Of a stretch of 64,000 nt of DNA, positions 21,547 to 41,968 are shown piece after piece (position 1 is the stretch's first letter; each line of letters begins with the position of its first letter). The DNA lies in the IMG/VR virus record IMGVR_UViG_3300036770_006893, positions 1-64,000 of that record; one strand, written 5' to 3'. Position numbers and translations under genes: made by a program. Under the pieces are notes generated by a model. The model made no database searches and was not told where the DNA came from. It saw only the letters and a program-made list of their open reading frames with translations.

Positions 21547-21971
21547 CTATAGCAAATCCGGTCAAATCTTCACTGAGACTATCAATAGCAAAATCTGCCT
21601 CCTGACTATTAACATCACTAATCTCAGGAAAATCAAAAACTACATAAACTTTCATAAGACCCTCTATTTTCGCTGACTATCAACAAGACCAGCAATCAGG
21701 CAGCATCAGGTGGGACACATAAATGATAATAGAATAATCAAAATATTTTCTACTATCTCTTTCATCTAATCTCATCCTCTAATATTTCTCCTAAACCCTT
21801 GCTGGTAAACGACTTACGACTCCATTGTATCGTCTAGAGGCTGGAGTAGCAAGCAACCTTTTTGAGATTCTTTGACAAAGTTTCGATCCTTGCCATTTTG
21901 ACAGGTGCCGCGTGAGATCTGCCATTTTGGCAGTGGTTGCGCCCTGCCTGCCATTTTGACAGGCGAGGTCA

Positions 21972-22011
21972 GGGCCGCCGTAGGTTATTCCCTCGTTCCC
22001 TACGGCGACCC
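21972..22011 (-). terminator. Long GC hairpin downstream of the DUF932 gene
   Basis: GGGCCGCCGTAGG ... CCTACGGCGACCC stem. Confidence 0.55.
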
Positions 22012-22038
22012 ATCACTCACCACGCCACGAAAGGAAGA

Positions 22039-22983
22039 CTAGATCGCGTTGGCAAACTCTAGGGCAGATTCCAACGCCTTATTATTCTCATTAGCATTCT
22101 GGCCGAACCAGAGGCTATCGAGCCGATTGTCGGTCGTGCGACCCTTACCATAGTTCAGATATTCATTGAACCCGTTATAAGCGGCCCACCAAGTACCGCG
22201 AACATTAGTCGCAGTTTGCTTCGGGCCTTCGATACGAGCAAGAATATCGTCCATAATATTACGGGTACGAGTTTTAATATCTTCGTCAGCACCCTTAATA
22301 TTCAGCACAACCTTAACATACTTCTCAATATCCTTCTGGTTGAAACTCTTACTAGCGAGGAACCGATACTGCTCCGCAGTAGCCTCAAATCCAGCATTAA
22401 TATTGTCCATAATATCACGCACTTGTTCCAGATTCTTCTGGCTGGAGCGAGTGTGACGAATACGGATCAACTTGCTATCATTATGCTTGTGAGCATATGA
22501 GAGAGTATTGACACAAACAACACGAATCGGCGTATAGCCTACGCGAATAGCAGTAGTACCGTCGTGACTATTACTCAGCAGGATAAACTTGCTAACCTCA
22601 TCACCCGGAACAATCTCAGCGTTGTCTCGGTTGAGTTGAGCCAGCACCCAAACCTTCTGACCGCTATGCAGCGATCCGGCAGTATGAATAGCACACTCAT
22701 TAGCATCAAGAAACGGCTGGAACCAATCGAACGCATCACGATTCTGAAGGGGCGTATAGCGAGGCCCGACAACGCCAAGAATGCTACCATCGCTCTTGCG
22801 ATATGTTGCACGATGGTTTACGGGCGTACCATCAACGGTCTGCAAATCCTTCAGACCTACTTCCCAATCCAGACCAGCAGCGACGATAGCATCGTTTACG
22901 TTGATACCCTCGTCAACACTATTGCCAAGGCCATGCCAAGGCGTCTCACCAACAAACATCATCTTTTCAACAGCAGCAGGCAT
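22039..22983 (-). CDS. DUF932 family protein (TIGR03299-like)
   Basis: MPAAVEKMMFVGETPWHGLG...TAGSL..G..VWVLA...LLSNSHDGT...RVVCVNTL; GGAG RBS supports a start at 22983. Confidence 0.88.
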   Translation of the reverse strand: MPAAVEKMMFVGETPWHGLGNSVDEGINVNDAIVAAGLDWEVGLKDLQTVDGTPVNHRATYRKSDGSILGVVGPRYTPLQNRDAFDWFQPFLDANECAIHTAGSLHSGQKVWVLAQLNRDNAEIVPGDEVSKFILLSNSHDGTTAIRVGYTPIRVVCVNTLSYAHKHNDSKLIRIRHTRSSQKNLEQVRDIMDNINAGFEATAEQYRFLASKSFNQKDIEKYVKVVLNIKGADEDIKTRTRNIMDDILARIEGPKQTATNVRGTWWAAYNGFNEYLNYGKGRTTDNRLDSLWFGQNANENNKALESALEFANAI

Positions 22984-23125
22984 CTTAATCTCCTTCGTGT
23001 GGGTTAACTTCTTTCGTTCCGATACGCTGATTCTACAATATGTATTCGGCTTGTCAACCCCAGGAAATGAAGAAAATTTTTCTGCCATTTTGGCAGGCGG
23101 GCCGCGGATGCTGCCATTATGGCAG

Positions 23126-23602
23126 TCATCTAATATTTAGAAGAGGAACCCCAAGATCACGCTTACATAGACGAGAACCATCCTCATTATCTTTATATGC
23201 ACATTCATTAGGCAAGTAGCAATATACGCCCTGGCAAACGCTACGAGCATATTCTTCTTTTATAACCTTTTTAATATGCCTTACGGTTGAACCAGAACAG
23301 ATTAAATCGTCTAATATAATATATCGAAAAGGGGCCACTCCCTCGGTACGAAACTCTGAATAGCATCGTTCCCCCTTTCTTACCACAACAATATTCTTGT
23401 TGAGCAACTCTGCGATTTGTGGAACTACCATCAATCCACTTACACCGCAGCAGGCGATACTATCGAAAGTATTCTCTATTTTCCTAAGATTACAAACAGC
23501 ACTAATAATAATCTTATTTCTAGCCTTATGATTCAAAACGTGACAAGTGTGGCTAGCACCCTGAATATATTTACCTTCGGCTGTTTTTCTAATGTCTTCC
23601 AT
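23126..23602 (-). CDS. Type I phosphoribosyltransferase-like protein
   Basis: PRPP-binding motif IILDDLICSGST; probable start at MEDIRK. Confidence 0.8.
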   Translation of the reverse strand: MEDIRKTAEGKYIQGASHTCHVLNHKARNKIIISAVCNLRKIENTFDSIACCGVSGLMVVPQIAELLNKNIVVVRKGERCYSEFRTEGVAPFRYIILDDLICSGSTVRHIKKVIKEEYARSVCQGVYCYLPNECAYKDNEDGSRLCKRDLGVPLLNIR

Positions 23603-23614
23603 AGGAGAGTCAAA

Positions 23615-23706
23615 GATGGACGGCACGATTCGAACGTACTAAAGAAAGGAAAGATAAAGCGGTATGCTTATTTATAGAATACTTGTCCCACCAAGTTGCG
23701 TCCATC
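23615..23706 (-). ncRNA. tRNA-like element (8-bp acceptor, intact T-arm, no canonical anticodon arm)
   Basis: GATGGACG/CGTCCATC stem; GTACG-TTCGAAT-CGTGC T-arm; ACTTG/CAAGT D-like stem. Confidence 0.5.
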
Positions 23707-23722
23707 AGAGGAGAAAGGCTAT

Positions 23723-23896
23723 TTATTCGTTATCTAGTTCATCAACCACATTATGGTAGTAATGCTCATATTCTCTTTCGTCCTCAAGATTATCATAATC
23801 ATCATAATCTGGTTCGTCAGAGTAGTTAGCATAATCATACAGTTCATCAGCATCTTCAACTACACGATCATAATCAAACTCATATTCATCATACAT
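23723..23896 (-). CDS. 57-aa extremely acidic D/E/Y-rich protein (below the ORF-track cutoff)
   Basis: AGGAG RBS; MYDEYEFDYDRVVEDADELYDYANYSDEPDYDDYDNLEDEREYEHYYHNVVDELDNE; 25 of 57 residues are D/E. Confidence 0.75.
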   Translation of the reverse strand: MYDEYEFDYDRVVEDADELYDYANYSDEPDYDDYDNLEDEREYEHYYHNVVDELDNE

Positions 23897-23948
23897 AGCC
23901 GTTTTCTCCTTTCGATCCTATCTTACACCAAACTAACGAACCGTCAAG

Positions 23949-24020
23949 TAGGCCCGCAGGGACATGCACCCCGTTCCATAGATTAAAAGTCTATTGCATC
24001 ACTACTAATGCTTCGAGCCC
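23949..24020 (-). tRNA. tRNA-Lys(TTT), atypical T-loop
   Basis: ATAGA-CT TTT AA-TCTAT anticodon arm; GGGCTCG/CGGGCCT acceptor; T-loop TGCATGT. Confidence 0.8.
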
Positions 24021-24031
24021 AAATCGGCCAA

Positions 24032-24403
24032 TCACCACCAACTATCGTAATATACTTTGTTGCCGTTGTCAAGAGCGGATCTAGCCTCTTGAATAAACTG
24101 TAAATCTTTTTCTCTATAATAGTCGTCGCTATTATCGCCAAAGAAAAATCCAGCAGTTTGTGGCATACGATTATTTGTGATATCTTTTTCTAGAGATTCT
24201 AAATCCTCATAAGATAGTTCCACAGGAACACAGTTGAAATCGCTAAGTCCCATAGAATCAGGCTCTGCGTTTTCATTCGGACGACCCTTGCTCTCCCACA
24301 GATTCTCCATCCACCCCTGAAGATTAGGGTGCTTTCTCCAATAGGCAATCTCATTCTTATTGCCTTCAGAATCAATACTATAAGCAAACTGATCCAAACC
24401 CAT
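24032..24403 (-). CDS. Conserved hypothetical phage protein
   Basis: MGLDQFAY...WRKHPNLQGWME...Y.SWW pattern; own promoter at 24423-24450. Confidence 0.7.
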   Translation of the reverse strand: MGLDQFAYSIDSEGNKNEIAYWRKHPNLQGWMENLWESKGRPNENAEPDSMGLSDFNCVPVELSYEDLESLEKDITNNRMPQTAGFFFGDNSDDYYREKDLQFIQEARSALDNGNKVYYDSWW

Positions 24404-24514
24404 CTCTTTCTCCTTTAGTAGGAGTATACCGTTTGTTATCGACTTGTCAAGAGTAAAAACTTTAACTTTTCGCTGACTATCGCCAAGACCGCAAATCCGT
24501 AGGATTAGGTAGTA

Positions 24515-24601
24515 CGGAATCTGAGGGATTCGAACCCCCGGAGGATTTTAACCCTCGGCGGTTTAGTAAACCGCTGCCTTAAACCGCTCGGCCAAGATTC
24601 C
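24515..24601 (-). tRNA. tRNA-Ser(ACT)
   Basis: GCGGT-TT ACT AA-ACCGC, long variable arm, G73, TTCGAAT T-loop. Confidence 0.88.
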
Positions 24602-24670
24602 AAAAGCGGATTTTTGTTAGGCTCAGAACCCGCTAAACTGGCATCGTAACTCAGACCGTCAGCCTCCGAA

Positions 24671-24755
24671 CACCAGAGATAGGACTCGAACCTATAGTGT
24701 CTATAAATGACGGAGGATTAACAATCCTCTGCGTTTACCATTCCGCCACTCTGGT
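24671..24755 (-). tRNA. tRNA-Asn(GTT) with a long variable arm
   Basis: GAGGA-TT GTT AA-TCCTC; ACCAGAG/CTCTGGT acceptor; G73; variable arm GTC-ATTTATA-GAC. Confidence 0.8.
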
Positions 24756-25383
24756 ATATTTTTATAATTTCTTTTCTATTTGTTGGTATATTGTATGATT
24801 TTGCCCATTTTCTTAATGCATTATCTGTTACTCCAAAACTTTTGGCTGCCTTTGTCCAGTTATTTTTTATCAAGATATTTATAAGTTGTTGTTTTGTTGG
24901 TCTATTAGTTATTTTTCTTAAACTTTTTTTAGAACAAGAACTAGAACAATAATATTTATTATTAGTTTCTTTTTTACATATCTTACATTGTTGTTTTGTT
25001 TTTACTCTCTTTTTTGTAGTTATATCTTTAAACTCGCTAAGAGCATCGTGAGTTTCTCTATGACAGTTAGCACAAAGTAATAAACATTTATCTGCTTCTT
25101 TTTTTAGTATTACTAATGACTTAGTGAGACCTCTTTGACTTAACCCGAATTCTTTTTCTTTAGGGTCTTTATGATGAAAGTCCATCGCCGCAATACATTT
25201 ATTGTATCCACAATTTTCACATTTACCACCTTTGTATTCTACAAGAGCTTTTTTTAAGTCTTTCCTTCTTTTTGTTACATAGTATCTATTTTTACATCTA
25301 TTACAACAAAATTTTCCATTATCTCGTAATGATGCTTCATTAGAACATAAATGCCACAAACATTTCATAGTATAACTCCACAT
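24718..25383 (-). CDS. HNH-type homing endonuclease-like gene inside the tRNA cluster
   Basis: CENCGYNKC..AMDFHH.DP...LLCANCHRE, extra Cys clusters and a C-terminal HTH-like segment; its 3' end overlaps the tRNA-Asn gene; start probably at MKCLW. Confidence 0.8.
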   Translation of the reverse strand: MWSYTMKCLWHLCSNEASLRDNGKFCCNRCKNRYYVTKRRKDLKKALVEYKGGKCENCGYNKCIAAMDFHHKDPKEKEFGLSQRGLTKSLVILKKEADKCLLLCANCHRETHDALSEFKDITTKKRVKTKQQCKICKKETNNKYYCSSSCSKKSLRKITNRPTKQQLINILIKNNWTKAAKSFGVTDNALRKWAKSYNIPTNRKEIIKIYQSGGMVNAEDC

Positions 25384-25433
25384 GTTATACTATAATACGC
25401 CAAGGTTCGAATTTTCAAAGATCTTTTTACTAA

Positions 25434-25505
25434 TTCCGGAGTCTGGGTACGATCCAGAAATAAACGGTCCAAAGCCGTTTGTGATACCAGTTTCACCACT
25501 CCGGA
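25434..25505 (-). tRNA. tRNA-Gln(TTG)
   Basis: AACGG-CT TTG GA-CCGTT; TCCGGAG/CTCCGGA acceptor; T-loop ATCGTAC. Confidence 0.85.
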
Positions 25506-25506
25506 G

Positions 25507-25579
25507 AGCCGGTAGTAGGATTTGCACCCACGACATTCAAATTACAAATTTGACACTCTACTAACTGAGTTATACCGGC
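25507..25579 (-). tRNA. tRNA-Thr(TGT)
   Basis: TCAAA-TT TGT AA-TTTGA; GCCGGTA/TACCGGC acceptor; T-loop TGCAAAT. Confidence 0.88.
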
Positions 25580-25580
25580 A

Positions 25581-25654
25581 TGGTCAGGGGCTGGACTTTA
25601 ACCAGCGACCTCCGGCGGATCCTCCGGTGTTCTGTCTACTGAACTACCCAGACC
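25581..25654 (-). pseudogene. Degenerate tRNA-like gene, anticodon undetermined
   Basis: D-arm GTTC/GAAC and T-arm GCTGG-TTAAAGT-CCAGC present; anticodon arm CCGG-AGGATCCG-CCGG is non-canonical. Confidence 0.6.
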
Positions 25655-25864
25655 TCACATATCATACTCTTGTCGCCACTGTTTGTCAATATCATTTCGA
25701 GTACGACGTCTTTTTGGCCGACTATCCATCGTAGTATCACGATACTCTTTATGACCAGTAGATACTTCCCAAGGCTTTTTAACCTTGAGTTTAATATTGT
25801 TGCCGTACTTGCGGCGAGGACGCATATCGTCGTTGTTGGGGAGGGTAATCATACCATTGACCAT
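25655..25864 (-). CDS. Small basic protein, paralog of 35119-35292
   Basis: KPWEVSTGH...DSRPKRRRTR motif. Confidence 0.65.
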   Translation of the reverse strand: MVNGMITLPNNDDMRPRRKYGNNIKLKVKKPWEVSTGHKEYRDTTMDSRPKRRRTRNDIDKQWRQEYDM

Positions 25865-26125
25865 TTTCGTGCTGATAAAAAACCTTGTCTACATTAGGAT
25901 CGTATGCCATTAAGCAATATTGTATCGGATGATTCGTTTTTGTCAACTCCTGTTTTTCCTCTAAAGCAGGAAGTTTAATCTCACCCTTTTGATAATCCTT
26001 TACACCATTATATGCGAATCCTAAAATAGCAATAATAACCCCTATCCATTGCAGCATAACTGTTCTCCTTGCTGATTGTTTTTGCTCGTCCATGAGCATA
26101 ATATCGGCGGCTGGACTGAAAAACT

Positions 26126-26710
26126 TTAGTCATGATCAGAATATCTGCCTGCACACTTATCACAAAAGCATTCGAAATCTTCCGCTCCATCCCAACATAC
26201 TTCTGGAAATCGCTCGTCTGCTTCTAGACTTTCAGCACCAAAGTCAATCGCTACAAGAATCTTCTTTTTATCACGCTTGACATATCCTAGGTTATATTCA
26301 TGGGCATCACGATAATAAATGCCATTATCCTCCATATCTCCGATCAGATCATTAATCTTTTCGTAGTTAGAACACCAATCACAGTTAGCACAATCTCCGT
26401 CGCAATCTATTGATTTACAACTATATGGACTAGCAATCTCTGTAAGATAACCCCAGTTACTTAGAACCATTTTTTCTTTTGACCTATACCCACCACGACC
26501 GTCAGACTCTGCGAAATAGTTCGGAATCCTAATGCGACACACTGGACTCAAAACCTTTGGAGCCATCATCGGAGATAAATGACTTTGTACAGCATGGGCG
26601 AAAGTAGCCAAACTTTTATTAGGAAAACCCTTAAATCCATAAGATTGATTTTTAACCTTATAGAAAGTATTCTGGCTACCACTATCAACATATTTTCCAA
26701 CGTATGCCAT
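26126..26710 (-). CDS. Protein kinase-like / phosphotransferase fold protein
   Basis: G-loop-like VDSGSQNTFY, Lys in YGFK, catalytic loop YRDAHEYN, DFG. Confidence 0.7.
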   Translation of the reverse strand: MAYVGKYVDSGSQNTFYKVKNQSYGFKGFPNKSLATFAHAVQSHLSPMMAPKVLSPVCRIRIPNYFAESDGRGGYRSKEKMVLSNWGYLTEIASPYSCKSIDCDGDCANCDWCSNYEKINDLIGDMEDNGIYYRDAHEYNLGYVKRDKKKILVAIDFGAESLEADERFPEVCWDGAEDFECFCDKCAGRYSDHD

Positions 26711-27316
26711 AACTTTTCTCCTTGTGTAGGCATTCTACAATAAGTTATCGGCTTGTCAACTAAGAAAATCCAGTAATCTTTTATGCCATTTTGGCAGTCG
26801 TGGCGGGCGGTCTGCCATTATGGCAGTCCCGCTTCTCTCTCATTAGCCTTATTGATAACCCTTTGTGTTTTAATAACTTGGGTCAATCGGTCAGCACTCT
26901 TATAGTCTCTCATGCCTCTCTCATCAACATAAAAATACTCATCTAGAACATCAAAATGATTAATGTCTTTAAAAACTTCGATAGCAGCATCTAGTGGACT
27001 ACTATTAGGAATGCTAACAATCTTTTCGACCGTATTACTTTTTACGTACCACTTACCCATCTGCTCAACTCCCCAAAGAGATTAGGATAGTATCATCATC
27101 GTCATGATTATTATAATCTAAACGACCAACAGTTATTTCGGCATCATCTAAAATATTTTCCAGTTGACTAGGACTAATAAGCGTATCATAGTTAGTACCA
27201 AAACTAATATCACTATTAGAAATAGCGTCCATCACACTACCCAAATCCAAACAGTTGTATTCACAAACATCTTGAATACTAACACACTTATATGTAAAAC
27301 TTTTCATATTATAATC

Positions 27317-28021
27317 CTAGTGAGCAGGAAAGAGAACATTAGCCAAACCGCGAACACACAAGTCGCATGATATACTATCTTTCGTGCCGGTGCAAGTGAT
27401 TTCCGACCGACCACGACGGATTTCGGGACACGTTACAAACTTGCTGCCGTTCAGTACCACAAGTTTCGGCAAGGCTTTCCGCCATGCTTCGGCCTTGACC
27501 TTGCTTTTGGGTCGCTTCGGTGCGATTTTCATATCACTATCACACCATGCAAACAACTTGAAACCCTGAGCCATAGCCTCGCCCATATCTTTATCGTCAT
27601 GGACACTAGCATATACATTCATATACTTTTCCAGACTAACAAGCCTATCATCATAAATATGAGTATAAAACCACATATCGGGCAGACTATCACCATCGGC
27701 CAGAATACTCTCACACGCCCATGTCCAGTTTGCCAAATAGTCTAAGTCTAGTTCACCATTTAGAAAAAAGTCGCCTCTTTCATGAACTCTAATACTTTTA
27801 TTTCTACGCTTTGCATCCAAAATCATAGCACGAATCTTATTCTTTTCTGTAACAAGATTCTGCATACCAGCAGGACGAACGCCCGGATAAATCTTTTCCG
27901 TCTGCTCTGCATAGCAGCCGTTTCCAAGATAATCACAATCCGATGGACAAGTATCTCCAACTGGCCTACTAACCACAACACAGTTTTTTCCCAGTTTATC
28001 GTTACCGTCTGCAACTTTCAT
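27317..28021 (-). CDS. Gp88-like Cys-rich protein (radical-SAM-related family)
   Basis: TCPSDC-x6-CYA and IRVHERGDF, WFYT motifs. Confidence 0.65.
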   Translation of the reverse strand: MKVADGNDKLGKNCVVVSRPVGDTCPSDCDYLGNGCYAEQTEKIYPGVRPAGMQNLVTEKNKIRAMILDAKRRNKSIRVHERGDFFLNGELDLDYLANWTWACESILADGDSLPDMWFYTHIYDDRLVSLEKYMNVYASVHDDKDMGEAMAQGFKLFAWCDSDMKIAPKRPKSKVKAEAWRKALPKLVVLNGSKFVTCPEIRRGRSEITCTGTKDSISCDLCVRGLANVLFPAH

Positions 28022-28200
28022 CGTGTTCTCCTTTTGCTCTAATGGATTCTACTATACGTTATCGGCTTGTCAACCTAAAAAATCCACAAAAAAACTCTGC
28101 CATTTTGGCAGGCCGCCCGCGATCTATGCCAATTTGGCAGGCAAATCTCCACGCCTTGCTAAGATTTGGTGTATCTCTATTATAACTATAAGGAGTTTAT

Positions 28201-28779
28201 ATGAAAAAGAACAAAACTAGCAAAGCTAAAATAGCTAATAATACTAAATGGGCTAATAAGAACCGCGACAAAGTTAAAGTATATAAGCAAAAATATAAAA
28301 ATAAAACTAAAGATTATAATAGATCATTAGTACAACAAATTAAAGAAAATAGCTCATGTAGTATTTGTGGCGAAACTAGATTCTATTGTTTAGATTTTCA
28401 TCATAGAGATCCATCTACAAAAAAAGATACTGTATGCAATTTAATACGGCATGGTTATTCTACACAAATCATTAAAGAAGAAATAGATAAATGCAATATT
28501 ATTTGTTCTAATTGCCATCGTAAAGAGCATACAAATACATACAAATATCTTACCAAAAAAGCTAGATATGTATTAGAACTAAAGGAAAAATCCTGTTGCT
28601 CTAAGTGCGGATTATCTATACCAGAATGCTTAGATTTCCATCATATTAACGATAATAAAACAGATGGTATAGGTGCTATGCTAAGAAATAAAAACTTTTT
28701 ATTAGAAGATATTAAAACTGAAATACAAAAATGTATAATAGTATGTTCTAACTGTCACAGAGAAATACATAATAAGTAA
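28201..28779 (+). CDS. HNH endonuclease-like protein with two tandem domains, opposite to the local orientation
   Basis: Two C..CG....CLDFHH...IICSNCHR repeats; abuts tRNA-Arg. Confidence 0.8.
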   Translation: MKKNKTSKAKIANNTKWANKNRDKVKVYKQKYKNKTKDYNRSLVQQIKENSSCSICGETRFYCLDFHHRDPSTKKDTVCNLIRHGYSTQIIKEEIDKCNIICSNCHRKEHTNTYKYLTKKARYVLELKEKSCCSKCGLSIPECLDFHHINDNKTDGIGAMLRNKNFLLEDIKTEIQKCIIVCSNCHREIHNK

Positions 28780-28780
28780 A

Positions 28781-28853
28781 TACTGCCGGAAGGATTTGCA
28801 CCCTCGTAAATCAACTTAGAAGGTTGATGCCTAATCTACTCGGCCACGGCAGC
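28781..28853 (-). tRNA. tRNA-Arg(TCT)
   Basis: TCAAC-CT TCT AA-GTTGA; GCTGCCG/CGGCAGT acceptor; T-loop TGCAAAT. Confidence 0.88.
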
Positions 28854-28919
28854 ATAAAAACCGATAGCCGCCAGTTCAACACTAGCGGTCTATCGGATAT
28901 TATAGCAGTTATGCTAGGC

Positions 28920-29189
28920 TCAGACAAGAACCTCCTCTTGCTTTTCCACCTTGCTGTTATGAGCATCGCCAGCAGCCTTAGCGGTTACACCAGTAACCCT
29001 AGCACGCCAGACCTTGTAACCCTGCTCGCTAAAAGCCTTGACTTCGCCAGCCTTGACATTAGCATGAACATCACCGGGCAGAGCATCACGCAGACACTCG
29101 CTAATCGAATCCACAACAACCTCACGGTCAAGATCGCCAGCCACAATATCAACAACAAAAGAAAACTTCTTCATGGTAAATCTCTCCAA
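28920..29189 (-). CDS. Hypothetical protein
   Basis: 89-aa ORF in the cassette behind the promoter at 29305-29332. Confidence 0.65.
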   Translation of the reverse strand: MERFTMKKFSFVVDIVAGDLDREVVVDSISECLRDALPGDVHANVKAGEVKAFSEQGYKVWRARVTGVTAKAAGDAHNSKVEKQEEVLV

Positions 29190-29441
29190 GTTAGTGTCAA
29201 TCGAACCAATAAAACAATCATATCACGCAATCATCACTTGTCAAGAGCCAATCCGAACTTTTTTGTTGTCGTGATCGGTTGGCGTCTTGTCGTGTGATGC
29301 TATCATTGTACCACTGTTATCGTCACTGTCAAGCCGCTTGCTGAATCTTTTTTTGGATTTTTCGTAAGTGTATGCTGCTACAGAGGTTACGTCATATCTG
29401 TCATTTTGGCAGTTCGGCCGCGGTGCCTGCCGCTTTGGCAG

Positions 29442-30289: not shown

Positions 30290-31554
30290 GCTTCTAGTAT
30301 ACCTTATCGACCAACTCTTGTCAAGACCTTTAAACTTTCGCTGACTACAGCCACCCCAGCCAAATCCGAAGGATTAGGAAAAACAATGTCGGCTTCCGCC
30401 ATACTCGACCAGCATTTCAGATAGCCTCTTTTGATATCATTGTGGCTATCCCCGTCCATTGTTTCCTTAAGTATACCATTAGTATCGGCACTGTCAATAC
30501 CAATCTATAAGAAAAATATTCTGCCATTTTGGCAGTTGCGCCGCGGCTCCTGCCGTTTTGGCAGCTAGGAGTTTTTATGCACTAGATCAATATACTTTTC
30601 TACTAGTTCGTAGGTATCAATCTGGTGAATGTTTATTAATTCTTTAGCCTTAGTAATGGATGCTTTATTCATGGCATTCATACGAGAGTTAAAGAAGTTG
30701 ATGATATAAACCATAGCCTGATCCTTAGTCATATTTTTAGGATCAGTACCGAGCAAGTCGCTAAAGTTTTTAGCCATTATTATTCCTCATGAAATCCCCA
30801 ACGGCCACTATCGCCCCAAACCTCTCTACTTTTAGGATAATCGTCAGGATAATCTCTTGCAGAACCGTCAGCATTAACCGGCCTACGTGGCCTAGTCATT
30901 TCAGGATTGTATGGCATCCACCACGGAGTATCCATACGATCTACAACCCCCAAAGATTCTTTACAATAGATGATATGATGGCTCACCGGATCGTCAGGAG
31001 AATACTTATACTGACCAAACCACACACCAATATACTTACCATAATAGTAGATAAGTTGTCCATCTTCTGGTTGACGATCAAAAAAACTAATCCATTCCAT
31101 TACCAACCCTCCGGCATAGGAATATCACCAAGATACATATAATATGCAACTTCATTAGCATCAAGAGTTTCCCAACCGCTATTGTGATAACCCCAAGAGG
31201 AACCATCCCAATATAGTTCACTAGGCTTGTTATTGCCAATAATAGCACAGAGATAATAGCCTATATCAATAGGTTGTCCACTTCGCCATTCCATTATTTA
31301 CCCCTCGTAATAATCACACACTTTGTACCCTTATCCTCATCAGTATACCTAAGACACTCATGAGACCCATAATACCAAACATCATTCTTAGAAAAGTTGA
31401 ATATAATCTCTTCCGTATGAAGTTGAGTATCATCATACCCACCCTCATAACCCAGAGTCAATACCCTCATATCCCCAGGATAATCCTTCAACTGCTCAAT
31501 CAGTTCGTTAACTGTCATGTTTGCATTCTACCCTATAGTTATCGTCATGTCAAT

Positions 31555-31965: not shown

Positions 31966-32075
31966 TCATTCTACAATCTAGTATCGTCTTGTCAAGAGAA
32001 AAAATCCACAAAAAAATGTCTGCCACTTTGGCAGATTTCGCGGCCCCTCTGCCGTTATGGCAGGCGGGGTTTTCT

Positions 32076-32558: not shown

Positions 32559-32753
32559 AAATCACCTATCTTTCTATTCAGTTGGCACTAGGAGAGGGAA
32601 GTTTACGCTCATTGCAAATCATAACAGTATCGGCAATCATGTCAATACCAGCAGAAATAAGATTATACTGATCGTCTGGTTTCATATCAGTCATAGCGGT
32701 ATGAATCACACAAACAGCAAACTGTTCCAGAATCTGAGTCAACTCGTTTTTCG

Positions 32754-33302: not shown

Positions 33303-33477
33303 CTCTTTACTCCTTAGAACCGTACCAGATATATCGGCATTTTATCAGCCGTTCGCCACTTGTCAATAAAAACTTTGACAAAATATAACTGTCATTTTGG
33401 CAGATTGGGCGCAAAAACTGTCATTTTGGCTGACAACACCCATGCCGCCCGAATCCGAAGGATTAGCAGGAACAGAA

Positions 33478-33550
33478 TAGCGCCACGGAGGATCGAACTC
33501 CGATCTCCGGGATGAAAGCCCGGTATACTAAACCATTATACTATGGCGCC
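33478..33550 (-). tRNA. tRNA-Glu(TTC)
   Basis: CCGGG-CT TTC AT-CCCGG; GGCGCCA/TGGCGCT acceptor; TTCGATC T-loop. Confidence 0.9.
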
Positions 33551-33826
33551 ATATCTAACAGGCTATTTTTTCAATCCAAATATAACTACCATACTTTTCT
33601 TGAGCACGACGCAACGCATCAGTTTCGCTCATAGCAACAACATAACCAACAAAACGATTATTTTGGAAAACTCTCCAAGAATAATCAGCATAACAGTCGA
33701 TGTTTGTAGCAATCATATGTTTATTGTATCGGTTCCTATACGACTGTCAAGAGAGAAAAAATACTGCCATTTTGACAGAAATCGCGGCCCGCCTGCCATT
33801 ATGGCAGAGCGTTTGGCTCAACCCTC

Positions 33827-34234: not shown

Positions 34235-34299
34235 ATCAAACCCTTTCGTTTATAAATCCTTCACTCAATAAAACTAGCATACCACAAGAAAAAACTTTG

Positions 34300-34635
34300 T
34301 CAAGCCGGGACAGCCAAAACGCTTTCCATAAGATTTTTAGCAATCTCATGAAAGTTCACAGCACAAACACTAGCATTCAATAGATCGGCCCAAATCGTTC
34401 CGGTCACATTAGCCTCACCAAGAACACTTTCCATCTGATTGTTATAACTATCCTTCAGTTTTTCGGTCAACAAACAAACAGCGTCCTCTTCCTTGCTAAA
34501 ATGGATTTGCTCCTCAGCACGATAATGATACAGTTCTAAAGCCATCTGACGCCAGTAAGAACTTGACGATTCATTGTTGTCGATCCACAACTGAACAGCC
34601 CACGTTTCGTAGTTAGAGTAGCCATTATAGGTCAT
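34300..34635 (-). CDS. Conserved hypothetical phage protein
   Basis: YNGYSNYETWAVQLWIDN motif; own promoter. Confidence 0.7.
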   Translation of the reverse strand: MTYNGYSNYETWAVQLWIDNNESSSSYWRQMALELYHYRAEEQIHFSKEEDAVCLLTEKLKDSYNNQMESVLGEANVTGTIWADLLNASVCAVNFHEIAKNLMESVLAVPA

Positions 34636-35118
34636 TGTAGTTTCCTTTGGGGTGATGCTCTAAGGATACCATATAGATCGGCACTGTCAAGCAAGAACTT
34701 GAAAAATATTTTTGCTGCCATTTTGGCAGGCCGGGCGCCACACCTGTCATTTTGGCAGATAGGTTATTTCCTGACCGTTTTCGATCATCGCAGCGTAAAT
34801 AGATATACGCTTATCCTTCTCACGCTTCTCAATCTGGTGGTCAGTTTCAACGCTGTCACGAGAATCACACTTGCGTTCCAGATCGGCCAGCGACACACTA
34901 TCGGTACGATTGTCGCGGAAATCTTCAGGCAGCCAGTGATTCGGAACCACAATCACATCCTTGATAACTCGCTCAAACTCAGCAATCAGTTCATATCCGT
35001 TCATCTTTTTTCTCCTGTGATGAATAGATTATACAGCCGTTATTGTGCTTGTCAACAAAAGAAAATCATTTTTTGCTGACTACAGCCACTCTAGCCAAAT
35101 CCGTAGGATTAGGTAAGA

Positions 35119-35292
35119 CTAGTCGTAGTCTCTTATGGCCCTACGCTTTTGATCGCCGCGAGTGCGACCACGTTTGGGGCGATTGTCGTGAGAACCGCTA
35201 CCACTAATATGGTTTGCGTGTCCGCGACCAACTTCCCAAATCGGCTTCACGTTGAGCCGAATCGAATCGTACTTTTTATTTCGCTTACCCAT
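35119..35292 (-). CDS. 57-aa basic protein (below the track cutoff)
   Basis: MGKRNKKYDSIRLNVKPIWEVGRGHANHISGSGSHDNRPKRGRTRGDQKRRAIRDYD, directly behind the promoter at 35302-35329. Confidence 0.7.
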   Translation of the reverse strand: MGKRNKKYDSIRLNVKPIWEVGRGHANHISGSGSHDNRPKRGRTRGDQKRRAIRDYD

Positions 35293-35410
35293 GATGCTAT
35301 GATTCTACAATACTATCGGTCAGTGTCAAGAGAAAAATCCACAAAATATTTATATGCCATTTTGGCAGAAATCGCGGCCCCGCTGCCATTTTGGCAGATC
35401 GGGGTTTTAT

Positions 35411-35632
35411 TCAGTAATCATCCCCATAGTGGCCGTAATACTCATCTTCACCCCAACCCGCCGAACCTAATGCGGATTCGTGATCTCCATCCATGCTATC
35501 ATCATAGTCATCGGTGAAGTCGTTATAATCATCATAGTTGACATCATCGGCTTCGTGCGATTCATCATCAATCCACGGCCAAATGGTACGCTCGGCCATC
35601 TCATCGAAACGATCAAAAGAATCCTGGCTCAT
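35411..35632 (-). CDS. Highly acidic small protein
   Basis: MSQDSFDRF...DGDHESALGSAGWGEDEYYG; RBS supports a start at 35632. Confidence 0.7.
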   Translation of the reverse strand: MSQDSFDRFDEMAERTIWPWIDDESHEADDVNYDDYNDFTDDYDDSMDGDHESALGSAGWGEDEYYGHYGDDY

Positions 35633-36255
35633 CTTATTATCCCTTCGGGTGAAAAAGAACAATCAAACCATACACACAGTATAAAGCCACAGCGGCGATT
35701 GTCAATAGGGTGTTCACTGAACATTCCCCCAAAATGGATCGTCCGCTGGAACAAACTCATCCACAATCCCGACTACTTCGGCCCAATCCCAAAAATCGGT
35801 CATGTTCTCCGGATCGTCAATCGGCTCGACCATAGGTTCAATCGTACCCTCGTCGGCCAGTTGATTCAGAATAGCGTTGATCGCGTCCGTATCGTCGAGC
35901 AGAGCCATCATTCGAGGAAACTGGTTCATGGTCATTTCTCCGTTGGGATGATACGCTGATTCTACAATAGAATATCGGCTTGTCAACTAAAAAAATCCAC
36001 AAAAATATCTCTGCCATTTTGGCAGTCCGGCCGCGGAAACTGCCATATTGGCAGCCCCTTGTTCAGTTTATAATGTAGGTAATATAACAACCCACAATAA
36101 AAGAAAAACTCAACAGAATATAATCCGCTTTATTCATCTTTTTCACTTATAGGAAAAATAAACTCACAAATACTATAAACACAAATACCACCAATAACAA
36201 ATCCAGCAAAGAATACTCCCCAGTTTACATATTCGGCCATCCCTAGCCCCTTTCT

Positions 36256-36795
36256 TTAAGAGTTAACTAAAATATTATCTTCAAACTCTGTACCATCCTG
36301 CAAATACCACTGATACTTTTTCTGGTAAACTTTAACAGGAGAATACTTGTTGATCCTATCCTTTGTGGTGCTGGTTCGCCATCCACCACTATTCAACTTA
36401 ACCGTACCATTAGGATAGAACCTCACAACCGCTGTACCATGCAACCGAATAGAGATACTATTATCATATTCGATTTCAGCGTATGTATTATTACCAATCT
36501 TTCGCTCGGTTCGCATAGTCTTACCATAAACCATGCTCAATGCTTCGGCGTAAGTCATTTTATTTTCCTCTGATTACAGAGCCTTGATTTTATTTAGAAT
36601 CTTAGCCACACCATCAAAATCGAGCCAGCCTAAAACATCTGCGGTAATGGGCGTATTATATGTAATCTCTCCATTATTGTCAAGTACCGCAACCTCAAAA
36701 AGTCCGTCGTTTCCACCGTATGTATTAGGGCCAGAAACCACACTTGACCCATAGCCGTTAGGAAACCGATAAATCTTCTGGTATGAATCAAACAT
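36256..36795 (-). CDS. Two conserved hypothetical phage proteins (36574-36795, 36256-36558)
   Basis: YRFPNGYG.SVV...GLFEVAVLD and GGWRTSTTKDRIN motifs; GAGG RBSs. Confidence 0.7.
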
Positions 36796-39464
36796 TTTCT
36801 ACTCCAAAGAAAGCAACCAAACCATACCACCCAATATCCATCCTGTCAATACTAAACTAATAACTTCCATTATTTTATCCAACTTGCCACATAACACCCA
36901 AACCCGAAGCAAGCCATTATAGCAGATAGTTCGCAAACAGTCAATACCATTTTACCCTCGTTTTTCGCTGACTATAGCCCACCTTGCCAATCCGATAGGA
37001 TCGGATGATACAATCACTTGGCGTGAATAAAAACTTTTTTACTAACGGTCTGATTTGTTACAGTAACAATCCAGTTTTTACCGCTACCATCCTCACGCAT
37101 GATACTATTGATAATACCAACGTGAACATTCCCCCTAGGATCAAACACGCTACCATACTTTCCCGTACGCATAGCGGCCATAATCTTATCTAGACTATTC
37201 ATCACGACACCCCCATCCAAGCGGCATTTTCCACACAATAAAGATAGAACATATCGTTCAACACCTCTCGATAGTTAGTATCGGTCAGCAGACGACGGTC
37301 CCGAGTAGACTCACACTCAGCATACAACCCACCGTCAGGAGTTGCAAGTAGAGTGATATTATGGCTCTCGCTGCCCCAAATCTGAGTCAGAGCATCTTTG
37401 ATTTTGTTGATTCCCATTTTCTTTTCCTCGCTGCTAGGTATATCGGTATTCTACAGGGTGAACCTTGAATGTCAAATAAAAAAATCAGAAAAATATTCGG
37501 CTGCCATTTTGGCAGATTTTGCGGCCCGGCTGCCATTTTGGCAGTATCAAAATCCCTTATGATGCTCTACCAGCATATGTAACATAATCTTTTCTGTTAT
37601 CATAACCGTGATACCTATAAGTAGGTTCACACATAAACGCTAATACATCCTTCATTTTATCAAAAGTGTAAGTCGCATGTGTAACTTTACTACGCAGCAC
37701 ATACTTTACAATCTGGCAATCAAAGTGCAGATTATAGTTATCCGCTTCGGCTTTGTTCTCAATATCAACCAATCTGGATCTCATATTATCACTCTACAGA
37801 AAAAGTAACAAGATTATTCACAAGTACGCTCTTAACCAACCTATTATCCTGTTGGATAACAACCATTTCACCCTTATCAGGATCGGTAGAGGGCCAACTC
37901 CAAACGTCGATAATAACACCAGTAAAGATACGGCCATCCTTACGTTGACAAGTAAAATGCTTGTTATAGTGTTCACGCATACTCATATTACTATTCCTTT
38001 CAACCAAACTCTTCATACTCTTCATCACTCAAATACGGCTCATTTGGACGGTAGCAGTTATAACTACCATAATGATCCGCATTAGTTTCATAATCACACT
38101 CTCGACCGCAACGCGAGCAAGTAGGTTCGTAATCAACAATATCAACCCTAACACCGCAACAGTTACTATTCATCTTTCAACCAATCACAAACAACGGAAT
38201 GTAAACAAACAAGTAAGCCCAAAAACCAACCAGAAAACCTACCAGACTCAGACCACTAATCATACCAAAAGTATCGGTATCGTGGCCGAACAGATTGTAA
38301 CAAATCCACTTTTTCATTGTGAATACTTTCCAGCGAGAAATCCGAGACAAAACACGATATTCAGAATCGGTAAAACTAGCACAAAAAATATAAAACCAGC
38401 ACGATACATTTTCTTTCTCTCCTGACTATTCTACCAGACTTTTTCTACTTGTCAACCCCTCAAAGCGGGGGGACTACTCTTGAACTTGAACTTTGATTGA
38501 ATGTGAAGTTCATCCATCACGAACGTGACAGCATCGTAAAGGATTCCACGGAAAACGTAATACTTCATTCGCATATCAAACAGTTTGACCGTACCATCCT
38601 CTTGCGGGTGGACAGTGAAACCAGCATCATAAGCGTAACGATTGAAACGACCAGTGATCGTGGAACGGGCTGGCATTGGCTTGATTTTCATTTTCTTTCT
38701 CTCTTTCTCTACTGACTATTCTACCAGACTTTTCTGCCCCGTAAACCCCCATCATGAGGGGTAGATGGTTTCCAGGGTCTTACGATTTTCGTCGATTCGC
38801 ACGATAGCCAAATCGTACTGGTAAAGGCTAGACTTGGTAGCAGATCGATAGGCTACAGTAGCCTCTTCGAGCGTAGCGTACACGTTGGACTGAACAAAAC
38901 CATCAAAACGCAAAGCAAACATTCTCAACTCTCTTTCTTTCTCTTTCTCTTTCTCTTTATATCGACATTATACCAAGCCCAACTTGAATGTCAAACAAAA
39001 AAATCGGTCGAAAAAAAGTTTTTTGTGGCATGATATTTGCTAGTAGCAAACCGCGTACCAAAAAAGTTTGGCACGATATTTGCTGACGCTGCCATTTTGG
39101 CAGGCCGCGCGCGATTTCTGCCATTTTGGCAGCGTATTCTCGCTGGCTACTGCCATTATGTCAGCCGATAGGATCGGCTGTTACAACCCCCTCTCAGTAG
39201 GGGTGTCCGTATGCGTCCAGCCCCTTAGGGTATCGCTTGTCAAAATCTTCTACCCTGACGCAATAATCGTTCAGTTTCTGGTAGAAAGTATCTGCAGAGC
39301 GAAGCAAAACATTTTCGGGATGATTGTTGATTCGTAAGAAAAATCCACCACCCCCCGATGGAGTGATATCAAACCGTACATCATCATCCATCATTTCATA
39401 GATAGCGTCGATGATTTCCTGAGCCGTAACGATTGAACCGATCATTTTTTGGGTTCCTTTCTTT

Positions 39465-39776
39465 TCAGTGGGTAATAACTTCGCGATTGTATGTATACGT
39501 CCACCACACTTCGCACTCTTCAAGATAGATCGACCGATAGGTGGGGCTAGGGTCGCGAGGATAATACCATTCAATCGTGACCAGCGTACCCTTAGGATAA
39601 GCCGCAACCTTGACGATATTTCCGGCGTAACCCTTCCCGTTATGCTTGACGCACTCGAAACCCTTATTTACGGCAACCGTGCCGAACTTGTCGCAACGCA
39701 TTTCCATTTCCGTTTCCATTTTCATTTCTCCCTTGTGATGATTAGATCCTACATTAGATGTCGGCATTGTCAACAA
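39465..39776 (-). CDS. Small beta-rich protein, paralog of 41434-41688
   Basis: ECVKHNGKGYAGNIVKVAAYPKGTLVTI...YRSIYLEEC; start probably 39725. Confidence 0.7.
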   Translation of the reverse strand: MLTMPTSNVGSNHHKGEMKMETEMEMRCDKFGTVAVNKGFECVKHNGKGYAGNIVKVAAYPKGTLVTIEWYYPRDPSPTYRSIYLEECEVWWTYTYNREVITH

Positions 39777-40215
39777 AAAAAATCACTCGATTTCAACCGA
39801 CGTCCATTCCTGGCAATCTGGGCAAATCACGACGATATCATCGACCGGGTCGCTTGGGCAAGGTACATCAACCGGGCAGCCGCAGCACTGCGAGATATAT
39901 TCAACATCATCAAACATTTTCAATCTCCCTTTTCCTTTTCACTTATCCTACATAGTGTATCGGCATTGTCAAAAAAAAGAAATAGAGAAATCGTTGGTGA
40001 AGTTTTCCCCACAAAAATATTTTCGTTTGGCATGATATTTGCTGGGGGCAGTTTGGCATGAGATTTGCTGTGCCTGCCATTTTGGCAGAAAACGCGGCCC
40101 ATCTGCCGTTTTGGCAGTCATATCTCGCTGGCTACTGCCATTATGTCAGCCGATAGGATCGGCTAGTACAACCCCTCCGAAGAGGGGAGTACCAACCAAC
40201 CCTACCTTTGGGGGG

Positions 40216-40395
40216 TTAGGCAAAATCTTCCTCGCCCTGAAAATCGTCGAGCCACTCATCATCCGTGTCGATCCAATCCTCATCATCTCCCATGATCGGA
40301 TCCCAACCGGTAGCATCCGTCACGAGCCACTCGCGACCATCCTCGTCCGTCATGCTGTCGGCCACAATCCGCTCAAAATCGTGAAGCATTTTCAT
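40216..40395 (-). CDS. 59-aa acidic protein (below the track cutoff)
   Basis: MKMLHDFERIVADSMTDEDGREWLV...WLDDFQGEEDFA; paralog of 41969-42130. Confidence 0.75.
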   Translation of the reverse strand: MKMLHDFERIVADSMTDEDGREWLVTDATGWDPIMGDDEDWIDTDDEWLDDFQGEEDFA

Positions 40396-41433
40396 TTCCT
40401 TTATTATCGGGTCAACAGAACAGCAATCGCCAACGATTTCCGATCATAGCAGCCATAGATGCCGCCGTCAATCAGAATCGTCCAGAATCCGTGTCGAGTT
40501 GGATGCGGGATAACTTTCATGCTCATATTCTACAATATATAATCGTCAAGTCAAATAAAAAAAATGAGAAGAAAAAATATTTTGTTTTGGCACGATATTT
40601 GCTGACGCTGCCATTTTGGCAGGCCGCGGGCGATTTCTGCCATTTTGGCAGTCCCTCCCCCATAATGGGGGAGAACATATGTATACCCTACCGATAGGGG
40701 GTCAATCCCCCAAATAACTTTCCATAAAATCAACATACCAGCACATAAAAGCCTTCCCCGCCTCATGTACGGTATATGAAACAAAAGCCGACACTACGAT
40801 ACAGGCGAACAGTATAGAAAAATCGTTCATTCTCAACCCTCCCAAGCAAACGGAGAAACTTCCTCACCCATAGCGGCGATAGCATCATACTGTGACCGCA
40901 AAGCCTCTACACGCTCCCGACTACCCGGCTTGCCAACCTTGATAATCATCGTATCCTCACCCCCACTATAGCGGGGGTCAACCTTCTCCACCTTCTCGAC
41001 TGCGGTTTCCCGCATAGCCTTACGATTGAACTTCAAAACCTTCTCACTGCGAATCGTGCCGCCATCGGCGGTACTCTTGTCGCAAGGGATTGCCAGACCC
41101 ACGAAGCACAGATACGCTTGACGCTTGGCGTTTTCAATAATCGGAAACATTTTGGATACCCTTAGTGGTGAAGTGAAAAACTTATTTGCAGGAAACAACA
41201 ACGAACCCGACAGGATTGCATACGCTCAACTTGTCGGCATCAACTTGGGCAGACTCCCGACTATTATATACCTTGCCGGGTTCGACACCAGCACAAGCAC
41301 ACGTTTCGGGCTGACTGTAGGCGTTGAGGGGTGTGGCCCCTTCATACGCTCGCGAACTTTTCATAATGATGAACATGACCACTTTCCTTCTGACTTGATC
41401 CTACCAAACTTTTCCAGACTATTCAACCCCCTC

Positions 41434-41688
41434 TCAATAGGGGGCTGGCTCGCCAGCATACCAGACCTTGCAATCTTCAAGGTAGATCGACCGATGCGAC
41501 ATCGGCATTTCACCGACACTATACATCCGACCATCATTTTCCAGAGGCTCGGCGTATGCAATCGTGACCAGCGTACCGCGAGGATATGCGGCAACCTTGA
41601 CGATATGGCCAGCGTAATGCTTGCCGTTCAACTTCTCACACTCAAAATCGAAACCAACTTGAACCGTTCCGAACTTGCTCATCTTCAA
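41434..41688 (-). CDS. Small beta-rich protein, paralog of 39465-39776
   Basis: ECEKLNGKHYAGHIVKVAAYPRGTLVTI...HRSIYLEDC. Confidence 0.7.
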   Translation of the reverse strand: MKMSKFGTVQVGFDFECEKLNGKHYAGHIVKVAAYPRGTLVTIAYAEPLENDGRMYSVGEMPMSHRSIYLEDCKVWYAGEPAPY

Positions 41689-41968
41689 CTCTCCTGTGGT
41701 GATGCTTTGATTCTACATTAGGTATCGGCATTTGCAAGAAAAAAAAATAGTCGAAAAAAAAGATTTTTTGGCACAAGATTTGCTGTTGCCATATTGGCAG
41801 AGCGTTTGGCACAAGATTTGCTGTAACTGCCATTTTGGCAGATTTCGCGCGATTTCTGCCATTTTGGCAGGTTGCCTCTTCTGCCGTTTTGGCAGTCGCT
41901 AACCGCCCGGTTTGGGTGGTACAATCCCCCATTGGGGGGATAGTTTGGTTTCCCTACCTTTGGGGGAG

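Follow-up and report, generated by a model that had tools for sequence, protein, structure and literature searches.

Early regions of the T4-type phages RB49/phi1, PST/T4 and nt-1/KVP40 contain promoter-early stem-loop (PeSL) cassettes, in which a near-consensus sigma-70 promoter, an AT-rich tract and a palindrome are repeated between small ORFan genes (PMC2839356, PMC4122927). Here we describe an array of cassettes headed by paired copies of a 15-bp palindrome, CTGCCA-N3-TGGCAG (referred to as BoxA), in bases 1-64000 (the window) of IMGVR_UViG_3300036770_006893, a 224-kb contig of an uncultivated freshwater phage. The array shares with PeSL cassettes the three elements named above, their repetition in a hyperplastic early region, a lineage-typical palindrome sequence, indels between relatives that break at the cassettes, and a stem-loop directly upstream of the promoter (the BoxA doublet can fold, and ends 22-25 nucleotides (nt) from the -35 hexamer); it also lies in a genome with some T4-like genes (rIIB, endonuclease VII). 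It differs in that two identical 15-bp dyads with a fixed 29-bp period and a GC core between them take the place of one G/C stem with a T run, in the lack of compensatory variation, in the absence of the element from half of the strong promoters, and in the sigma-54-type motifs present on the opposite strand of many cassettes. The BoxA layout is a novel form of T4-type promoter/stem-loop cassettes, family-wide and strongly non-random. The comparison with T4-type cassettes had been drawn in a first-pass annotation of this DNA and is apt, given rIIB, endonuclease VII, a protein weakly similar to sigma region 2, and the position of the indels.

Left of 42.9 kb the window is coded on the minus strand only, and right of 43 kb lie plus-strand late genes, including those for terminase, portal and cement protein. 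The genome further encodes DNA ligase, ThyX, ClpP and a clamp-loader-like AAA protein. No record of a known phage showed DNA-level similarity to the window or similarity to the portal, and the terminase shares 25% identity with the terminase of Bacillus phage Slash-like phages; the label T4-type is loose, because terminase and portal are distantly related to their counterparts in known phages. A second copy of the same phage from another sample, a 194-kb circular permutation, provided about 90 kb of sequence outside the window, and the domain and protein screen of the genome covered about 150 of the 224 kb.

Exact copies of BoxA occur 21 times in the window, all within 21919-41870 (0.00 expected). 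When up to two mismatches were allowed, 40 matches were found against 1.07 expected and a maximum of 3 in shuffled sequences; 39 of them lie in 21890-41895, and the remaining one, at 48496, is of chance grade. The copies form 17 loci, each with at least one pair exactly 29 bp apart from start to start, and all are intergenic by the open reading frame (ORF) calls made here. At 10 of the 17 loci (23082, 26783, 28097, 30521, 32020, 33389, 34715, 35354, 36011 and 37501) the proximal BoxA starts upstream of a leftward promoter, 23-26 bp away from its TTGACA; offsets of 14 (33764), 66 (29398) and 49-102 (the four loci with sigma-54-type motifs) were measured at others. The 90 kb outside the window contain a single look-alike with two mismatches, no doublet and no sigma-54-type motif, and all exact doublets of the 224-kb contig fall inside the array. 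The recount thus agrees with the first-pass annotation, which had reported 39 copies at 17 intergenic loci with a 29-bp pair at each (about one copy is expected by chance), some ten loci with the 23-26-bp offset (exactly ten were found) and confinement to this zone, which holds in the window and in the additional 90 kb. A literature search for the motif returned unrelated primer sequences only, and the only known RNA families recognized in the sequence were tRNAs. The loci of the array and the divergence point beside it are as follows:

21890-21962, minus strand: BoxA triplet (21890, 21919, 21948; spacing 29, 29), leftmost locus, no clear promoter downstream
23030-23125, minus strand: cassette head, BoxA 23082/23111 and TTGACA-16-TAGAAT 23057-23030; centres at about -66 and -95; drives the DUF932 gene 22039-22983
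26732-26826, minus strand: cassette head, BoxA 26783/26812 and promoter 26759-26732
28046-28140, minus strand: cassette head, BoxA 28097/28126 and promoter 28073-28046
29305-29441, minus strand: BoxA 29398/29427 with a more distant promoter, 29332-29305 (offset 66)
30470-30564, minus strand: cassette head, BoxA 30521/30550 and promoter 30497-30470
31968-32063, minus strand: cassette head, BoxA 32020/32049 and promoter 31995-31968
33339-33432, minus strand: cassette head, degenerate BoxA 33389/33418 and promoter 33366-33339; just after tRNA-Glu
33723-33807, minus strand: cassette head, BoxA 33764/33793 and promoter 33750-33723 (short offset, 14)
34663-34758, minus strand: cassette head, BoxA 34715/34744 and promoter 34690-34663
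35302-35397, minus strand: cassette head, BoxA 35354/35383 and promoter 35329-35302
35959-36054, minus strand: cassette head, BoxA 36011/36040 and promoter 35986-35959
37448-37544, minus strand: cassette head, BoxA 37501/37530 and promoter 37475-37448; cassette-loss junction in relatives (37499 to 39088)
38967-39164, minus strand: composite head, promoter 38994-38967, A/T tract, plus-strand sigma-54-type motifs 39026 and 39069, three BoxA copies (39089, 39118, 39150)
39945-40149, minus strand: composite head, promoter 39972-39945, plus-strand sigma-54-type motifs 40028 and 40054, three BoxA copies (40074, 40103, 40135)
40527-40651, minus strand: composite head, promoter 40554-40527, plus-strand sigma-54-type motif 40588-40603, BoxA 40608/40637
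41710-41895, minus strand: composite head, promoter 41737-41710, plus-strand sigma-54-type motifs 41769 and 41807 interleaved with four BoxA copies (41786, 41827, 41856, 41881)
42660-42790, no single strand: divergence point without BoxA, leftward consensus promoter 42687-42660 back to back with rightward sigma-54-type motif 42740-42755

Read along the minus strand, a unit consists of a gene end (sometimes with a CCCC..GGGG hairpin), BoxA, 14 nt, BoxA, a T-rich tract, TTGACA-16-17 nt-TAGAAT, a Shine-Dalgarno sequence and one to four small genes. The anatomy described in the first-pass annotation therefore stands except for its hairpin, which is not always present as a separate structure, because at several loci (23111, 29427, 30550) the distal box begins right after a stop codon; at 31968-32063, on the plus strand, a T run comes after the longer CCCC..GGGG hairpin that contains the distal box. 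Sigma-70-type promoters matching at least 11 of 12 consensus positions were found at 27 minus-strand sites between 23 and 43 kb, and matches to this promoter type total 95 against 48.9 expected. About half of these 27 promoters carry no BoxA, among them the pair that comes first at the divergence point (42687, 42388), and the conserved T-rich tract upstream of the -35 hexamer is found at the BoxA-less promoters as well. BoxA had been proposed as the mark of the promoter cassettes; it marks 17 loci, that is, a subset of the early units, since only about half of the strong sigma-70-type promoters of the zone carry it. The existence of BoxA-less twin promoters speaks against a need for BoxA in promoter activity. 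With transcription assumed to start 7 nt after the -10 hexamer, the boxes are centred at about -66 and -95.

Other repeats were observed around the same promoters. A second upstream repeat, CCTAATCCTWCGGATT..GGCTRTAGTCAGCRAAA (minus strand; 24455-24510, 30330-30385, 35060-35115 and 36950-37010), stands upstream of several BoxA-less promoters, at a distance of 15-20 nt from the -35 hexamer, and pieces of it flank the third BoxA copy at 39150 and at 40135 (CCGATCCTATCGG). The word GCCGATA(A/C) directly follows TTGACA on its 3′ side in most early promoters (e.g. 26752-26745, 28066-28059 and 35979-35972); it resembles the sigma-28 -10 word GCCGATAA, and no matching -35 element was seen. A candidate late-promoter word, TACTATATAMCT, showed no enrichment.

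Almost every cassette gene is an ORFan. The largest gene of the array, the BoxA-driven gene 22039-22983 (minus strand), encodes a DUF932 protein (E = 2.5e-49), and the only other cassette genes with family matches are PRTase-like (23126-23626), GP88-like (27317-28021) and Kyano_Gp96-like (36256-36558). Given this almost exclusively ORFan content, the earlier description of the array as host-takeover genes is an assumption. Two paralogous proteins of 53-59 amino acids (aa) encoded in conserved cassettes (40216-40395 and 41969-42130, minus strand) are very acidic, D/E-rich and W-rich, and were mostly found in BoxA-bearing relatives.

Exact doublets were found in 77 stretches on 56 contigs of IMG/VR. 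Among 185,579 bacterial species genomes none was detected except in one 1.8-kb scrap of a metagenome-assembled genome. Many of the BoxA loci overlap or stem from related phages, so the family counts refer to non-independent events. The 29-bp spacing occurs in 364 of about 430 neighbouring pairs, and at the 12 box positions conservation exceeds 90%. The outer positions of the 14-nt spacer drift and its core is conserved as CCGCGGCC or the reverse complement GGCCGCGG, with a conserved central CG within the 44-bp element. Distances to the -35 hexamer and to sigma-54-type motifs were tallied over 208 distinct cassettes; in 69 of about 111 cassettes free of such motifs and with a detected sigma-70-type promoter, 22-25 nt separate the end of the proximal box from the -35 hexamer.

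On the late side, the first gene that is well conserved served as query for the collection of 484 relatives from IMG/VR:

45398-46018, plus strand: 206-aa protein; resemblance to sigma-70 region 2 weak and below threshold, possibly gp55-like

Among the best 80 of these relatives (61-84% identity in the 206-aa protein), BoxA doublets were present in 3 and sigma-54-type motifs in 48. Many BoxA-less relatives have a different dyad at the same place after the sigma-54-type motif, for example ..CGTAAGT-N13-ACTTACG.., with a GC core (GCGGCCGC, GGGCGGGCC) and another copy of the dyad behind it, and CCTTAC-N6-GTAAGG dyads were found beside sigma-70 promoters in relatives. Relatives keep the architecture but exchange the sequence of the dyad. 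PeSL stem-loops also differ between T4-type lineages (PMC4122927), and the swap alone is therefore no proof of a protein.

Sigma-54-type promoters were recognized by GG at -24 and GC at -12, in the form TGGCAC-N5-TTGCW. Eight exact copies of TGGCAY-N5-TTGCT lie in the window (0.14 expected), spanning 39026-42755. All are on the plus strand and point towards the late genes (39026, 39069, 40028, 40054, 40588, 41769, 41807 and 42740). The four cassettes nearest the late genes hold such motifs; 13 of the 17 loci of the window are without. Seven of the eight motifs stand between the T-rich tract of a leftward promoter and BoxA, so that the predicted +1 falls near the centre of the first box; in motif 40588, for instance, the C of the -12 element is at 40602 and the predicted +1 at about 40614, within the box 40608-40622. 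The eighth motif (42740) and the first leftward promoter face away from each other, and at the predicted +1 of the motif lies a plain hairpin plus T run (42763-42790); this region is conserved in relatives. The motifs are consensus matches that may be used by a host sigma-54 factor. Neither these motifs nor the GC core of the spacer, the long RNA hairpin that the doublet can form and the BoxA-less twin promoters had been described in the first-pass annotation.

The same association was found across the family. The BoxA loci and the window together contain 263 sigma-54-type motifs, about 120 of which have a BoxA start 16-21 nt after TGGCA, and the family logo is TTTGGCAC-RR-N-A-TTTGC-T. The best 80 of the 484 relatives contain 152 motifs where chance would give about 1.6; every one of them is located on the early side of the 206-aa gene, 102 directed towards the late genes and 50 away from them. 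This excess of about 100-fold is confined to phage early regions, and we found no report of sigma-54 promoter arrays in phages in the literature. In a minority of cassettes the sigma-54-type motif is co-directional with the sigma-70 promoter, and in four the right half of BoxA is the -24 element. BoxA was also considered as a general -24 element or decoy, given the similarity of its half-site TTGGCAG to TTGGCAC, and rejected, because G12, which corresponds to the second essential G, is free to vary. Of the relatives L200, L203, L210, L249 and L263, some contain face-to-face overlapping pairs (TGGCAC..TTGCT / AGCAA..GTGCCA), and some up to seven near-identical sigma-54-plus-dyad cassettes in 6 kb.

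A palindromic doublet may be conserved as a DNA site or as an RNA hairpin, and the substitutions bear on both. Over 685 BoxA copies we counted 348 one-sided changes and 3 compensated ones, though G.U-type intermediates are common. The internal AAA/AAA mismatch (a 3x3 loop) persists; a centre arranged so as to complete the stem was seen in only 13 of 174 doublets. Each box is its own 6-N3-6 dyad, a property that a simple long hairpin could do without, and the loop length is fixed at 14 nt. A stem within the spacer was ruled out, as its mirror positions avoid complementarity (z = -5.8). As far as alignments can tell, these patterns show selection on sequence and not on pairing.

We favour, with a probability of roughly 0.4, the reading that these are PeSL-like cassettes whose boundary element is an operator for a putative dimeric protein gating the sigma-70 and the opposed sigma-54-type promoters. 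The doublet would be a DNA operator for two dimers of one sequence-specific protein, bound 29 bp apart and centred at about -66 and -95. We observe the geometry, conservation, distribution and junctions of the element and infer the protein, which is probably phage-encoded and would differ between lineages. In favour of this reading are the non-random, confined occurrence of BoxA, its geometry fixed across the family, the selection on sequence, the phage specificity of the doublet, the swap of the dyad between relatives, the coupling to sigma-54-type motifs and the junctions. Bound to BoxA, it would more likely gate or shut off and insulate a subset of the early units than enable their firing, and gating, shut-off or insulation is favoured over activation because the promoters are already near consensus and have BoxA-less twins. 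In the four cassettes next to the late module, one or two opposed sigma-54-type promoters would lie between the UP tract and BoxA, and the same protein, sitting on the sigma-54 +1, may control antisense, late-ward transcription. The regulon of a single regulator proposed in the first-pass annotation is still the best reading, unproven because no binding protein was found.

Several observations weigh against an operator of this kind. The 44-nt doublet is predicted to fold as RNA on either strand (-16.5 to -22.5 kcal/mol, z down to -4.2), 148 of 174 promoter-oriented doublets (85%) have their A-rich centre on the sense strand, and the tolerated transitions favour G.U pairing in the RNA of the T strand (119 vs 43, a 2.8-fold bias in counts that ignore shared ancestry), which a symmetric dimer would not predict. 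PeSL stem-loops of T4-type phages are conserved per lineage without a dedicated protein (PMC4122927). The first-pass annotation had placed the boxes at class I activator positions (-65 to -95); under the start sites assumed here the predicted centres are within this range but would not match the usual positions, being off the -61.5/-71.5/-82.5/-92.5 face. No candidate DNA-binding protein was found, and Pfam DNA-binding domains are absent among the about 115 early ORFs of the window; the screened 150 kb likewise yielded no binding protein, enhancer-binding protein or recombinase. The family best correlated with BoxA, F2, has an Sm/SH3-like fold, which is more typical of RNA binders:

39468-39719, minus strand: F2 paralogue, small Sm/SH3-like barrel protein; other copies at 41437-41682 and 37792-38028

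The F2 model is a confident barrel (predicted local distance difference test (pLDDT) score 88), with bL19, Hfq and LSm as the best structural neighbours, none of them significant. Close homologues occur only in BoxA-bearing relatives, but a profile finds divergent members in BoxA-less relatives; these members and the Sm/SH3-like fold make F2 a weak candidate for the BoxA binder. The most conserved early protein (105 aa, 40836-41150) gave a poor structure model (pLDDT 67) and no result from the protein atlas.

The main rival to the operator, possible if on balance doubtful, is an RNA element: the doublet would be a PeSL stem-loop in which the first BoxA pairs with the second in transcripts of either direction, insulating the units by termination or pausing, and forming at sigma-54-type transcripts a 5′-terminal hairpin that stabilises or attenuates. 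A small RNA-binding protein, for example the Sm-like F2, might recognise it as N does lambda boxB. The predicted hairpins, the transition bias towards G.U wobble and the strand-specific A-rich centre all suit it, as does the lineage specificity of PeSL stem-loops (PMC4122927). Every sigma-54-type motif of the window has a hairpin at approximately its predicted +1, formed by BoxA doublets or, at 42763, by the plain hairpin and T run, and at several loci BoxA adjoins the stop codon as the sole hairpin before the next promoter. A scan for hairpin-plus-T-run terminators flagged the proximal BoxA with the T tract, but at five loci only. This tract begins 0-8 nt from the stem and stands equally at BoxA-less promoters, hence it is a promoter part, and BoxA with the tract does not look like a canonical terminator. 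Against pairing in general stand the 348 single and 3 compensatory changes despite abundant G.U intermediates, the 3x3 internal loop that is conserved and not closed, and the loop fixed at 14 nt with a conserved, unpaired core; 13 of the 17 loci, moreover, have no sigma-54-type motif. BoxA resembles lambda nut boxB and HK022 put RNA in being a 15-nt interrupted palindrome with an A-rich sense-strand centre, drawable, like boxB, as a 5-bp stem with an A-rich pentaloop, which occurs twice within early transcripts ahead of terminator-like structures. Unlike those elements, BoxA has no boxA-type (CGCUCUUA) partner in the cassette alignments and shows no covariation, it is at the 3′ ends of units and not just after promoters, and no N-like arginine-rich protein was found among the early ORFs.

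The remaining explanations assign the doublets to activators, host factors or recombinases. Doublets could be sites like upstream activating sequences (UAS) for a host or phage activator, two dyads about three turns apart, which switches on the sigma-54-type promoters and damps the neighbouring sigma-70 early promoters; we consider this unlikely, although consensus motifs are tightly coupled to BoxA. PspF bound to its UAS activates the sigma-54 pspA promoter and represses the divergent sigma-70 pspF promoter, a precedent for such joint control (PMC3709507). With glnAp2/NtrC and pspF-pspA/PspF the array shares the match of TTTGGCAC-N5-TTGCT to the -24/-12 consensus, paired dyads about three helical turns apart, and the back-to-back arrangement with a sigma-70 promoter (PMC3709507). 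The genome also encodes a 60-aa protein with a full PspC domain (E = 3.7e-20; L282:17777-17959, plus strand, about 19 kb beyond the left end of the window), which as a lead only may link the phage to a host phage-shock/PspF sigma-54 circuit. PspC of enterobacteria helps to release PspF, a sigma-54 activator, from PspA, and the paired dyads resemble a shortened NtrC site, TGCACC-N5-GGTGCA. However, the boxes lie immediately downstream of the motif and over +1 (about -6 to +38), not 80-150 bp upstream, and 137 of the 208 cassettes, that is, most dyad pairs, have no sigma-54-type motif nearby. The free variation of G12 leaves BoxA no general role as a -24 element, and the explanation presumes a sigma-54 factor in the host. 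The 150 kb screened contain no Sigma54_activat domain and no RpoN, ORFs with GAFTGA or an RpoN box are absent from the window and the related loci, and a back-translated GAFTGA pattern scan of viral contigs gave, among the matches listed, chance matches only. Very unlikely, in our judgement, is a sponge or recruiting site for an abundant host dimer, comparable to the Fis sites above the rrn P1 UP element. At rrnB P1 the Fis sites are at -71 and -102 beside an UP element. The cassettes are similarly arranged, with a strong core promoter, a UP-like T/A-rich tract at about -40 to -60 and, upstream of it, two dyads at an interval of about 29 bp; 39 sites per genome copy would suit a sponge. The predicted box centres nonetheless miss the -61.5/-71.5/-92.5 face, and to our knowledge BoxA is unlike the Fis, CRP and LexA consensus sequences. 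The sponge suggested in the first-pass annotation is disfavoured, because the doublet, the form searched for, is absent from the 185,579 bacterial genomes and because in close relatives, found in many of the lake samples concerned, another dyad occupies that position. Least probable of all is site-specific recombination at attC-like or res-like doublets, through which a recombinase would excise or insert cassettes. It draws on the 44-bp element with its conserved central CG, on junctions at or inside BoxA and on the succession of stem, unpaired centre, stem and variable loop, which resembles a folded attC; palindromic doublets at cassette 3′ ends, foldable as stem, bulge, stem and loop, with variable cassette content are also a likeness to REP-BIME elements. 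But neither an integrase or recombinase Pfam match nor a RAYT transposase was found in the 150 kb, the cassettes have their own promoters, the fixed distance to these promoters is left unexplained, and attC conserves structure whereas the sequence of BoxA is strictly conserved. Homologous exchange between repeats of about 100 bp, as proposed for PeSLs, explains the junctions equally well.

The junctions themselves were located by comparison with relatives of 70-85% identity, in which 16% of homology ends are no more than 5 bp away from a BoxA locus (expected, 5%). This enrichment of about 3-fold answers the suggestion in the first-pass annotation that cassette boundaries in relatives be checked. 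Junction hot spots are at the distal doublet edge (41870, 37544 and 28140), whole cassettes between two BoxA loci are missing from two relatives (L024, L025), and in a metatranscriptome contig of a relative 37499 is fused to 39088 inside 16 letters of the box that both sites share. The metatranscriptome data are assembled contigs, directionless and broken at repeats, which show presence and the cassette-loss joint. PeSLs are likewise break points between relatives (PMC2839356, PMC4122927). In the compared sequences the repeated heads of about 100 bp serve as break points for cassette gain and loss. Of the recombination scaffold proposed earlier the enrichment at BoxA remains, as a by-product only; homologous exchange is the simpler mechanism because no recombinase was found in the 150 kb.

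If the operator is taken further, the relatives may form a freshwater phage family with bidirectional switch modules, in which sigma-70 and opposed host-sigma-54-type promoters share a private dyad operator on the sigma-54 start that is exchanged together with its putative binding protein; this extension we regard as tentative and rather improbable. If true, it would be the first phage regulon acting on sigma-54 closed complexes, with an activator or gate at a position not known for enhancer-binding proteins. The cassettes extend the promoter/stem-loop principle of T4-type phages to a distant, abundant freshwater phage group, with a boundary element that appears to be under sequence-specific, not merely structural, selection. 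As operators, the doublets would provide naturally swapped pairs of operator and regulator as well as promoter parts that are compact and insulated; as RNA elements, they would be an unusual double-dyad terminator or 5′ cap.

The 206-aa protein has four invariant Cys residues and its own sigma-70-like promoter near 45210. The adjacent gene (46011-46838, plus strand) encodes a 275-aa protein that is 76% conserved across relatives and has neither a Pfam nor a PDB sequence match; by eye its N-terminus is helix-turn-helix-like and the remainder resembles a long coiled coil, and its role may be that of a small terminase or of a regulator. The same phage population encodes a sigma-70-family protein of 194 aa (L286:11425-12009, plus strand) in which region 4 is clear (E = 7.5e-13).

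Seven of the eight tRNA genes of the window lie inside the array, and one of the eight was recognized by Rfam only:

23949-24020, 24514-24756, 25434-25579, 28780-28854 and 33477-33551, minus strand: tRNA genes within the array
19552-19624: further tRNA gene

ARAGORN assigned to one tRNA-Ser the odd anticodon ACT. The G+C content of the array is 40-49% against 33% in the rest of the window, with a step between 21900-42850 and its flanks, which have 32-36% on both sides (33% over 1-20 kb). It is highest in the conserved cassettes adjoining the late genes, and it is possible that the early genes are tuned to host codon use before phage tRNAs are made. Elsewhere (L279:19430 onward), a 5179-aa gene product with a PhageMin_Tail match is a very long tape-measure-like protein.

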